From: Wallemia ichthyophaga EXF-994
Lineage: Eukaryota > Fungi > Basidiomycota
DNA length: 32,000 nt
Assembly: GCF_000400465.1 (NCBI RefSeq)
Contig: NW_008806284.1
Coordinates: 1-32,000 of the forward strand
Reading direction: 5' to 3'
Position numbers and translations under genes: made by a program. The notes under the pieces were generated by a model. That model saw only the letters and a list, made by a program, of their open reading frames with translations. It made no database searches and was not told the DNA's origin. Positions 19,818 through 22,048 of this stretch are shown piece after piece (position 1 is the stretch's first letter; each line of letters begins with the position of its first letter).

Positions 19818-20927
19818 TTACATCAGATGATGTTTGTTAATCTCCTCATAACTCCATTCTAAAGGCTCTTTCTGTTGGTTTGTTTGGCTTATTTGGTTGA
19901 GGAAATCAGCCACACTATTCCAATAATCGGGACTGATGCAGGTGTCGTTGTGCGTACCATGGGGAAATGATTTCCACGTGCAGATTGACGACAGTTTCTC
20001 ATCTCTATCCTCCTTGACTGTACGATAGAGAGACTCCATATGAGACACTGGTACAATTTCGTCCTGTCTACCTGAAAGGAAGAGTGTATGTACACTTTTT
20101 CCAATTTTCTTTATAGATTCGCCGCTATTCCATTTTTCAGTGCATAAGAAAGTGAAAGGGGTGAGGAGGGGAATGATAGAGGGAATGAGTTGGGGTATAC
20201 TAGTAAAAGTGTTTTCTAAAATCAGCGCGTGAATAGAATCTGGATAATCTTTAGCCAAATCTATGCACACAGCTCCACCAATTGACTGTCCATAGAGAAT
20301 TACGTTGGTTGATGACGTTAATGGATGTTGCTGGATGAATTTGAGAGCAGCTCTGGCATCAATACGTATACCAGCTTCAGAAGGCACACCTTCACTCTTT
20401 CCATAACCTCTGTAGCTAACCATCAAAACATTTGTGTTTAAATTTTTGTAGAAGACTTGGGCGAGTGGAAGGCGATGGCCCTGGTGAGTTTGAGTGTGAG
20501 TGTGTGATTGTTTTAACTTAAAACTCACCATATTACCCGCGTTGGCATGGAAGATTATCACAGTTGGTCGTGAACGTGATGTTTGTGATGAGGGGTGTGT
20601 TATCAGATAGGCTTTTATCTTATAAGCACCTGATTGCAGTGTTATGTCTTGGTAAGGCATATCGAACCTAGCGAAAGCGGAGGGCGTTGAGCAGTGAACA
20701 TTTCTACGCATGCGACACTTACTCATTTGGAGTCATAACGACACTGCGAGAATCAGCAGGCATGTTGGCTGGATAGATTAAGCTTGTTTGATAGATATAG
20801 AGGAGAATGGCAGTGCCGCTAATGAGGACTGCTGATACTCCAATAAGGCCCTTGAGGGGAGTGAGATGGTGTGTGTGTCATGTAGCCAAGCAACCTTAGT
20901 GCACTGCGCTATAACCGATAGAGCCAT
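19818..20927 (-). CDS. BEM46: Bem46/ABHD13-family alpha/beta hydrolase with N-terminal membrane anchor
   Basis: LLYIYQTSLIYP, FHANAGNMGHRL, SYRGYGKSEGVPSEAGI, YGQSIGG nucleophile elbow, LILENTF, DEIVP and HNDT; exon 1 20927-20895, three introns. Confidence 0.88.
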
Positions 20928-20939
20928 GACGGTAGCTGA

Positions 20940-21619
20940 TCAAGGGGCGTATATGAATATCTCGGCTATTTGAAGAGTGGGGGAATTTGCGGGTGGAGTT
21001 GGAGGTGCTTCCGCGTACAAATGACTCGAAATAGTTGAATTGCTCTCGACTACGTCACAGAAGAGATGATCCAAGTCGTCATCGTCGTCATCGTCCTTGT
21101 GGATGTTATCGAGGATAGAATGAAGTGCTTGTTGATTGGTGTGCTGCTCCTCCACCGATAGCGGCTCACTCGGAGAAATTCCATCGTTAATCGATTTCTT
21201 TGTTCGTTTGTGTGGTTTCCGGTGGATTACTTGGAGAGGCGTTACGTTAAGAATACGCTGTATACACATTGAGAGCCCCAATTCCTTTGTCATGTACTTG
21301 AGGCACTCAAAGCTATCCTCTAGCGCTGCGTCATCCAATCCAATCAAATGACCATCGTCCAGAACGCCAATCTGGTACAAACAGCGACCGCGACCCTGCA
21401 ACAGTCTGAACTTCATCTGAGTCATGTACCTGTCCAAACGATCCTTTGTCGTGTTTAGTGTGAGTTTCAGCTGTGGCGGGTGGGTGAGTTGATTGTTCGC
21501 AGTGCAATTCAACACACTTTATACTCAACAAAGCCAACGTCACTCTCTTCAACTATCTTTCTAGTTGGTACTGTATCACTTTGAAGCCACTCCCAAATCG
21601 TTATCCCCGTCGACGTCAT
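20940..21619 (-). CDS. Stand-alone GTPBP1/GTPBP2 N-terminal-domain protein (~210 aa, no GTPase domain)
   Basis: Exon 21619-21518, intron 21517-21471 and exon 21470-20940 give EESDVGFVEYKLKL...DRLDRYMTQMKFRLLQGRGRCLYQIGVLDDGHLIGL, matching the GTPBP1/2 N-terminus from memory; no P-loop follows. Confidence 0.75.
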
Positions 21620-21675
21620 TATGCAACCAATTTTCACCAACAAATTTTATCAATTTATTGTTACAATGAATCAAT

Positions 21676-22048
21676 CTAATCGAAGAGACCGAGACCCATG
21701 TCGTCGTCAGACTCTTCCTTAGGCTCTTCCTGTACATATAGGTGGTTAGCGAAAATCTTCCAAGGAATCGTATCAACGAACCTTCTTTGGTGCTTCCTCA
21801 GCGGCGGCTGGAGCGGCACCTGCAGCAGGAGCAGCAGCAGCAGAAGCAGATGGAACAGAAGCGAGCTTCTCGGTACCTTGAGCGATCAACTCCTCGATGT
21901 TCTTGCCGTTAACCTCCTCGATGAGCTTGTTGAGGCGGCTGTCATCAGCTTCGATACCGACAGTTGAGAGGAGCTTCTTGACGTCCTCAGCTGATGGGGA
22001 GGTGTTTCCACCGACGGTGAGCAAAAGGTAGGCAGCGACGAGCTTCAT
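21676..22048 (-). CDS. RPP2: 60S acidic ribosomal protein P2
   Basis: [24 protein letters not shown], Ala-rich hinge, and C-terminus [13 protein letters not shown] after one intron. Confidence 0.97.

Follow-up and report, generated by a model that had tools for sequence, protein, structure and literature searches.

The 32-kb stretch of the genome of Wallemia ichthyophaga, a halophilic (salt-loving) basidiomycete, that was analysed in this study is referred to here as the window. An intact two-exon gene was found on its minus strand (21619-20940), the translation of which gives a product of 210 amino acids (aa). This product contains the N-terminal domain (N domain) of the translational GTPases GTPBP1 and GTPBP2 and no GTPase (G) domain. 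We assign both its identity, a GTPBP2-type N domain and nothing else, and its architecture with high confidence. An earlier sequence-only reading had placed the gene at 20940-21619 and translation shows these to be its exact bounds, with the ATG at 21619 and the TGA at 20942-20940 on the minus strand. All of the motifs listed in that reading are present in the product (EESDVGFVEYK/LKL, TQMKFRLLQGRGRCLYQIGVLDDGHLIGL, HRKPHKRTKK and DDDDDDD). The features of the locus are collected in Table 1.

Homology to GTPBP1 and GTPBP2

A phmmer search of 5.8e9 proteins matched the product to a G1-bearing GTPBP-type fragment of 135 aa (P0003) with an E-value of 8.9e-13 and 51% identity, and an exhaustive phmmer search of 1.84e9 cluster representatives returned 1242 matches at E<=1e-3, with 199 of them at E<=1e-10. 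A 20-sequence domain profile matches residues 97-171 of the solved human GTPBP1 (9ypg) at E 6.5e-15. Two structural models were made with AlphaFold2 (AF2), one of the whole 210-aa product and the other of a mini-domain in which residues 17-113 are joined to residues 195-210. The best Foldseek match is GTPBP1 of the 80S complex 9ypo, at E 6.6e-3 for the full model, whereas the mini-domain matches the GTPBP1 N domain at E 5.2e-5 with a TM score of 0.66 and a root-mean-square deviation of 2.0 over 92 columns, and this is its only match in the Protein Data Bank (PDB) below 1e-3. The sequence-only reading had proposed a free-standing GTPBP1/2-type N domain without its GTPase, and sequence, profile and structure searches agree with that proposal, as no G domain is encoded. 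Weak phmmer matches to unrelated PDB chains (E 0.36-1) were treated as chance.

The N domain is closest to the GTPBP2 type, with the signature GN.EYKLKL, TQMKFRL and IGV.D.G; the EYK motif is missing from human GTPBP1 in the profile alignment. All sixteen invariant columns of our alignment A2 are present in the Wallemia protein (E-Y-K, R, T-Q, R, G, Y, G, D-x-G, G and S) and these residues are common to N domains of the GTPBP2 type with and without a G domain, from ciliates to animals.

A separate observation concerns the N-termini of many GTPBP2-type proteins (the G-bearing fragments P0108, P0101, P0228, P0301 and P0292), which read M..F(M)GFGLFDP or FLSLFDP and are similar to the C-terminal tail of the ribosomal P-stalk. 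This start may be a mimic of the stalk tail; the Wallemia protein does not have it.

No P-loop was found in the 210-aa product. In a Walker-A scan of the window the sole motif in a plausible coding context belongs to a kinesin and no GTPBP G domain was found, and a tblastn search of the window with seven full-length G-bearing GTPBPs gave a match at 21177-21473 only (E about 1e-13), with no domain II or III and no G domain. The possibility of a hidden GTPase exon was rejected on these two results, as the N domain alone was matched, and the absence of the G domain and of the beta-barrel domains II and III, which had been noted from the sequence, extends to the full 32 kb. A GTPase exon further downstream is very unlikely since a conserved gene begins 12 nt past the stop codon. 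Being without a G domain, domain II or domain III, the protein can neither bind GTP nor carry tRNA. No GTPase gene adjoins the locus in W. ichthyophaga (32 kb), nor its orthologous loci in a second Wallemia species (12 kb) and in Lactarius (20 kb).

Protein architecture

The AF2 model has a predicted local distance difference test score (pLDDT) above 90 across residues 21-110. Residues 111-199 are mostly disordered (pLDDT 42-58 over the insertion at 114-195) save for a helix at residues 140-158, which lies in a block of pLDDT 73-81, and a final strand is predicted at residues 200-208, with pLDDT values of 83-94 over the last 20 residues. When residues 114-194 are deleted, as in the mini-domain model, the chain is compact (pLDDT 94.4, predicted TM score 0.86) and its C-terminal segment is still a strand. 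The sequence of this strand, (L)QIAEIFIY, resembles the strand preceding the P-loop in G-bearing GTPBPs (GLIAEILVTK or ITEVLVRKVP) and the C-terminal strand RLIVEALVVRK of GTPase-less relatives, and reads ITEVLVY in a more distant Wallemia-like sequence (P0119). The protein is thus a complete N domain that carries a loop of about 85 aa inside its last hairpin and terminates at the place expected for the linker to the G domain; it stops two residues past beta5, and in GTPBP1 and GTPBP2 this point is followed by the linker and, after it, by the G domain. The basic patch and acidic stretch had been read from the sequence as a C-terminal tail replacing the G domain. The two models and the strand motif instead place them in an insertion between beta4 and beta5, and the last 12 or so residues belong to the N domain itself.

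Another candidate for the last strand, LQVIHRKP, was suggested by a MAFFT alignment to ITEVLVRKVP, in which the rest of the protein would be a tail. It was rejected, as AF2 gives a low-confidence coil there and the strand at 200-208, and as agaricomycete relatives hold both ...VYKPRP... and a separate C-terminal RLIVEALVVRK-FLDF, which corresponds to the GTPBP2 strand and linker.

Several short elements in the insertion are conserved. In the basic patch, K119-P120-x-K122 is invariant in four Wallemia-like sequences, and agaricomycete members have comparable patches (...KPRPMK..., ...KNKRAKK...). The patch HRKPHKRTKK looks like a nuclear localisation signal (NLS) and could function as one. The residues I-N-D-x-I-x-P-S-x-P-L are invariant in the same four sequences, which share only 42-72% identity overall, and the ILDN helix and the acidic run are also conserved among the Wallemia-like sequences.

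Insertions in the beta4-beta5 hairpin were seen in other relatives as well (P0251 and P0315, the latter a partial sequence from Blyttiomyces sp.), one being about 55 aa long in a G-bearing protein and one, in the chytrid partial sequence, being rich in basic residues. It thus seems that insertions are frequent at this hairpin and that this tendency is older than the loss of the GTPase.

Conservation and selection in Wallemia

The order of the genes in the window (NLE/WD40, PTPA, RPS15, RPP2, the N-domain gene, a BEM46-like hydrolase and RPN2) is the same on a 45-kb contig (L001) of a second Wallemia species. The orthologue there shares the start, is interrupted at the identical codon by a GT..AG intron of 42 nt and ends in ...QIAEILIYAP followed by a stop. 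The two proteins are 72% identical, whereas the neighbouring genes are 78-97% identical between the two species, and the gene thus evolves faster than its neighbours yet is clearly constrained. The sequence-only reading had named neutral evolution as grounds against its proposal. By the NG86 method the nonsynonymous substitution rate (dN) between the two Wallemia orthologues is 0.18 and the synonymous rate (dS) is 1.55, which is saturated, giving a dN/dS of 0.12 that indicates purifying selection and not neutrality; for the domain core the ratio falls to 0.04, and for the insertion it is 0.165. In a third, more distant lineage (P0119/P0263), with 42-43% identity in a four-way alignment, the open reading frame (ORF) and several short motifs are kept. 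The target is a real gene under purifying selection.

Table 1. Features of the N-domain gene and its immediate surroundings (window positions).
Feature	Positions	Strand	Description	Evidence
Exon 1	21518-21619	-	Residues 1-34, MTSTGITIWEWLQSDTVPTRKIVEESDVGFVEYK; beta1 with invariant E-Y-K; ends ...SDVGFVEYK	Translation; start and exon end the same in L001
Intron	21471-21517	-	47 nt, GTGTGT...CAG, phase 0, right after EYK	Removal rejoins the frame over EYK-LKL
Exon 2	20940-21470	-	Residues 35-210 and TGA at 20942-20940	C-terminus ...QIAEI(F/L)IYAP-stop kept in L001 and P0002
N-domain core	21234-21571	-	Residues 17-113, beta1-alpha1-beta2-beta3-alpha2-beta4; interval spans the intron	AF2, profile match, dN/dS
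Insertion in beta4-beta5 hairpin	20988-21233	-	Residues 114-195, mostly disordered	AF2, deletion model, dN/dS
Basic patch HRKPHKRTKK	21195-21224	-	Residues 117-126, NLS-like	Sequence
Short motif INDGISPSEPL	21159-21191	-	Residues 128-138	Conserved in four Wallemia-like sequences
Predicted helix and acidic run	21075-21155	-	Helix 140-158 (...LHSILDNIH) and DDDDDDD (160-166)	AF2, conservation
C-terminal beta5 strand TLQIAEIFIY	20949-20978	-	Residues 199-208, completes the N domain	AF2, strand motif of relatives
Spacer between RPP2 and the N-domain gene	21620-21675	-	56 nt, from RPP2 stop to ATG	Conserved in comparison with L001
RPP2, upstream neighbour	21676-22048	-	Exons 22048-21782 and 21729-21676; stop 21678-21676	Translation; PF00428 recorded on the public model
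Downstream spacer and start of BEM46-like alpha/beta-hydrolase gene	20925-20939	-	12-nt spacer 20939-20928 and ATG 20927-20925; first exon MALSVIAQCTK (11 aa)	First exon kept in L001; hydrolase domains identified

A family of GTPase-less proteins in basidiomycetes

The family was counted among the 150 best database representatives, of which 144 were screened with a motif script. A total of 88 of the 150 are GTPase-less proteins with a C-terminal strand motif, with lengths of 219-1102 aa. They share an architecture in which the N domain lies near the N-terminus, no P-loop is present, a long low-complexity middle region carries basic patches and a strand lies at the C-terminus, usually RLIVEALVVRK and then ...FLDFGGF and the stop. 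Every named GTPase-less member is a basidiomycete and the named members represent thirteen genera in all four subphyla, namely Agaricomycotina, Ustilaginomycotina, Pucciniomycotina and Wallemiomycotina. They include Schizophyllum, Crepidotus, Cyathus, Steccherinum, Rickenella and Lactarius in the Agaricomycetes, Kwoniella in the Tremellomycetes, Thecaphora, Tilletia and Exobasidium in the Ustilaginomycotina, Atractiella and Melampsora in the Pucciniomycotina, and Wallemia in the Wallemiomycotina. In the W. ichthyophaga protein 170 residues separate EYK from the C-terminal strand, against 166-758 in the family, and the Wallemia proteins are 207-210 aa long as compared to a family median of about 460 aa. 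The protein is very probably not an oddity of Wallemia but the shortest member of a family that extends throughout the basidiomycetes.

Members of this family in other genomic contexts likewise stand alone. The orthologue in Lactarius indigo (JAFKAC010000011.1, locus L003, 10001-11097) is annotated as H4582DRAFT_179336 with 159 aa, which is a truncated model, as the frame resumes past an unannotated intron and ends with ...KRVIVEAMIIRELDQEEGFLDFSSF-stop (...FLDFSSF); no G domain was found there in 20 kb. Its neighbours, a UQ_con gene and a YIF1 gene, are unrelated to translation. Some GTPase-less members carry the automatic UniRef/UniProt name 'GTP-binding protein 2'. In Schizophyllum commune (P0270 and P0277) the annotation of some strains joins the family member to a downstream 106-aa gene (MSNYEQTGEPN...), and that of other strains keeps the two apart; this downstream gene may be CsbD-like.

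Nineteen of the 150 representatives contain a P-loop; seven of these were looked up and two could be named, one a trypanosomatid protein and the other an entry labelled only 'GTPase'. A search with the N-domain profile for full-length basidiomycete GTPBPs returned mostly short exon fragments from animals. We found no paper on the GTPase-less family, and a search of the literature on GTPBP1 or GTPBP2 in basidiomycetes gave nothing relevant.

Neighbouring genes and the fused annotation

Three genes on the same strand are tightly packed, with spacers of 56 nt between RPP2 and the N-domain gene and 12 nt between the latter and the BEM46-like hydrolase gene. With such packing either the genes are co-transcribed or their promoters and untranslated regions extend into coding sequence next to them, and the arrangement suggests overlapping or polycistronic transcription. 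Polycistronic and readthrough transcripts are on record in other basidiomycetes (PMC4503453). Within the spacer at 21620-21675, about 48 of the first 52 positions are identical in both Wallemia species while dS in the target is saturated (about 1.5), which suggests a constrained 3'-end or promoter element; an AATAAA is also present in the W. ichthyophaga spacer. The (GT/CA)-rich stretch at 20470-20530, which is read as 'SHTHTQTHQ' in a long BEM46-like ORF, coincides with the gap between two tblastn segments to L001 and is probably an intron and not coding.

The sequence-only reading had linked the gene to the ribosome through the adjacent stalk gene. RPP2 does lie directly upstream, with its stop 56 nt before the ATG, but this position has no evident functional meaning. 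This adjacency is specific to Wallemia, and as it is missing in Lactarius it provides no evidence for a stalk-related function.

The public model E3P86_01710 (P0001), a protein of 296 aa that UniRef lists as '60S acidic ribosomal protein P2', has a part that is 99% identical to the target protein. In this model RPP2 runs in frame into the target at residue 17 by way of a GT..AG interval (21689-21571), the AG acceptor of which is also present in L001. However, the fusion needs an atypical GTCTCT donor and removes the conserved P2 tail GLFD, which intact RPP2 encodes before its own in-frame stop. From these sequence features, the fusion model is probably an annotation artefact of the 56-nt spacing. 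The Wallemia gene may nevertheless be co-transcribed with RPP2, or occasionally spliced to it as a minor fusion isoform.

Proposed function and alternative explanations

We favour, with moderate confidence, the explanation that the gene encodes a GTPase-less protein derived from the GTPBP2 N domain that acts as a non-catalytic binding or regulatory module. The invariant GTPBP2-type residues are kept under strong constraint without a GTPase, which suggests that the function of the domain is independent of a covalently attached GTPase. Under the proposed mechanism, the GTPBP2-type N domain would have an autonomous and non-catalytic binding function of its own, the protein would serve translation-linked surveillance as an adaptor or a regulator and the hairpin insertion would supply localisation or docking motifs. 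This adaptor or regulator role is put forward tentatively. A broader proposal, that the GTPBP2-type N domain acts autonomously as an effector module, that it has a conserved ligand of its own and that basidiomycetes have reduced GTPBP2 to it, is rather doubtful at present; the free domain may regulate a remaining GTPBP1-type GTPase in trans, or may act directly on ribosomes, RNA or the decay machinery.

Several observations weigh against the favoured explanation. To our knowledge, the sole published role of the N domain in this family is that of a steric brake in GTPBP1. In the cryo-electron microscopy (cryo-EM) structure of the human 80S complex, the GTPBP1 N domain (aa 62-151) is eIF1/IF3-C-like and sits on the G domain with no ribosome or tRNA contact, where it slows release after GTP hydrolysis as a steric brake, and its deletion speeds elongation (bioRxiv 10.1101/2025.09.26.678779). 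As this domain contacts only its own G domain, it offers no ready function for a free copy. The core of the Wallemia domain is charge-neutral (14 K+R and 15 D+E) and thus not like a typical nucleic-acid binder. The Wallemia proteins also do not have the FLDF(G)GF end motif or the MFGESESESPRVPSPWD start motif of agaricomycete members. The W. ichthyophaga N domain scores 104.8 bits with the GTPase-less profile and 100.7 bits with the G-bearing profile, whereas typical GTPase-less members differ by +46 bits, and the placement of the Wallemia protein in the family hence rests on its architecture and taxonomy. The GTPase may have been lost independently in Wallemia.

An unlikely alternative is that the protein has been split off as the N domain from a GTPBP GTPase whose gene lies elsewhere in the genome, possibly an N-domain-less GTPBP2 or GTPBP1, onto whose G domain it would dock in trans as a removable brake on release from the ribosome. 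The contacts of the human GTPBP1 N domain with the G domain only and the faster elongation upon its deletion are in line with such a subunit, as is the fact that most GTPase-less members retain FLD(F/L), the linker motif, together with some hydrophobic residues at the expected start of beta1 of the G domain. GTPBP1-like GTPases without the N domain are reported from giant viruses (PMC6582330), so that the two halves can work apart, and for Laccaria, Cryptococcus and Ustilago alike eGTPBP1 as well as eGTPBP2 is listed in Atkinson 2015. No G-bearing protein was identified as basidiomycete among the 150 best matches, only two of the P-loop-containing ones being named, which also counts in favour of this alternative. 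However, the loci inspected have no adjoining GTPase gene. The linker motif is entirely missing in the Wallemia proteins: the W. ichthyophaga protein ends with ...IAEIFIYAP-stop and P0119 with ...ITEVLVYSQNELSGNTL, and F(L/I)D(F/Y) is also absent from some Ustilaginomycotina, such as Thecaphora (...VVRRFEQ). No N-domain-less basidiomycete GTPBP turned up, with no search aimed at such proteins having been made. Moreover, the hidden Markov models of Atkinson 2015 span the whole protein, and the basidiomycete eGTPBP2 entries could themselves be GTPase-less proteins.

It is distinctly improbable that the domain binds RNA (tRNA or rRNA) or cleaves it in the manner of the Schlafen and SAMD9 tRNases, a likeness to Schlafen/AlbA_2 domains having been raised in the sequence-only reading. 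The part of this claim that holds is a generic Alba/IF3-C-like alpha/beta fold. Foldseek searches with the mini-domain return SpoVS, Alba (1h0x, 1udv, 1nh9 and the Alba-RNA complex 3wbm), SLFN12/13/11/14/5 and the tRNase domain of SAMD9 (E 2e-3 to 3e-2, TM 0.4-0.58), with the Schlafen core of SLFN12/13/11 at E 0.009-0.03 and TM 0.47-0.58. The eIF1/IF3-C-like fold reported for the GTPBP1 N domain (bioRxiv 10.1101/2025.09.26.678779) is in agreement, and helix alpha1 is basic (5 K+R and 2 D+E) and contains the invariant T-Q-x-K-x-R. On the other hand, all of these fold matches lie above E 1e-3 and Alba, SpoVS and some Rossmann-type methyltransferases score as well as the Schlafen cores. A sequence link was not found: the target matches no Pfam family at E<=10, a Pfam scan of 20 family N domains gave neither AlbA_2 (PF04326) nor any other relevant family at the same threshold, and the family profile matched no Schlafen chain in the PDB. 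The neutral charge of the whole domain, the replacement of the conserved Glu of the 'EG' motif by Gln in both close Wallemia species and the lack of contact with tRNA or rRNA in the cryo-EM structure of GTPBP1 (bioRxiv 10.1101/2025.09.26.678779) are further points against this alternative. Nothing in the target backs the suggested RNase activity, an RNA-binding surface like those of these folds or the catalytic residues of Schlafen proteins.

That the ORF is no independent gene, being either a decaying GTPBP2 relic or exons of a larger product (an RPP2 fusion or a GTPase-containing mRNA), is very improbable, since the in-frame fusion model and the short spacers that make readthrough transcripts plausible (cf. 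PMC4503453) are outweighed by the low dN/dS, by the ATG, intron position and stop kept in L001 and the ORF kept in P0119, by the atypical donor and the loss of GLFD that the fusion entails, by the absence of a G domain or domains II and III within 32 kb with a conserved gene 12 nt downstream, and by the stand-alone homologues in differing contexts in other basidiomycetes.

An N-domain-only protein conserved under purifying selection in all four subphyla of the basidiomycetes argues that the GTPBP2-type N domain works without an attached GTPase. If the autonomous-module proposal is true, simple laboratory fungi would offer a way to test what the GTPBP2 N domain does at the molecular level. With its 210 aa the Wallemia protein is a natural minimal construct on which structure and binding can be studied, and orthologues in transformable laboratory basidiomycetes open the way to genetic tests. 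There is also value for annotation as a fused 'RPP2' model hides the Wallemia gene, the model in Lactarius is cut short and some Schizophyllum models are fused to a neighbour, while the label 'GTP-binding protein 2' is misleading for GTPase-less proteins as they cannot bind GTP.

Comparison with known systems

GTPBP1 and GTPBP2 are EF1A-like translational GTPases (GP-1 family) that guard neurons against ribosome stalling. Their N domain is homologous to the Wallemia protein, with the same beta-alpha-beta-beta-alpha-beta-beta order, and the GTPBP2-type signature GN.EYKLKL...TQMK(W/F)RL.EG.G..Y.IGV.D.G...GL...S is found in the latter too. However, GTPBP1 and GTPBP2 have their own G domain, domains II and III, H-loop and C-terminal tail, all of which are missing from the Wallemia protein, which is not a translational GTPase and differs further in the insertion of about 85 aa in its beta4-beta5 hairpin and in its stop right after beta5. 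The Alba, IF3-C, eIF1, SpoVS and Schlafen-core folds show no detectable sequence homology or Pfam match to it.

HBS1L isoform 3, which has no GTPase domain, is an exosome-linked bridging factor and the N-terminal region of Ski7 bridges the exosome and the Ski complex (PMC6120710). Both serve as precedents for EF1-family surveillance factors with a GTPase-independent N-terminal adaptor part, although these adaptors have no sequence or fold kinship to the GTPBP N domain, being mostly disordered and derived from alternative splicing or duplication. Any link of the fungal GTPase-less proteins to the exosome would be pure analogy. The GTPBP1-like GTPases of giant viruses without an N domain (PMC6582330; bioRxiv 10.1101/2025.09.26.678779) are a mirror image of the Wallemia protein, as they have kept the GTPase and lost the N domain, and the two modules are thus separable.

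Further counterparts are the uncharacterised GTPase-less proteins of other basidiomycetes (Schizophyllum commune XP_003029301.1/D8QBR2, Crepidotus A0A9P6JTA7, Melampsora XP_007415039.1, Tilletia, Kwoniella and Exobasidium), which have in common with the Wallemia protein the split architecture and the 'IGVLDDG.LIGL' and 'RLL.G' variants. It is more fitting to call the Wallemia protein the minimal member of a GTPase-less derivative of GTPBP2 that is basidiomycete-wide and had not been described.

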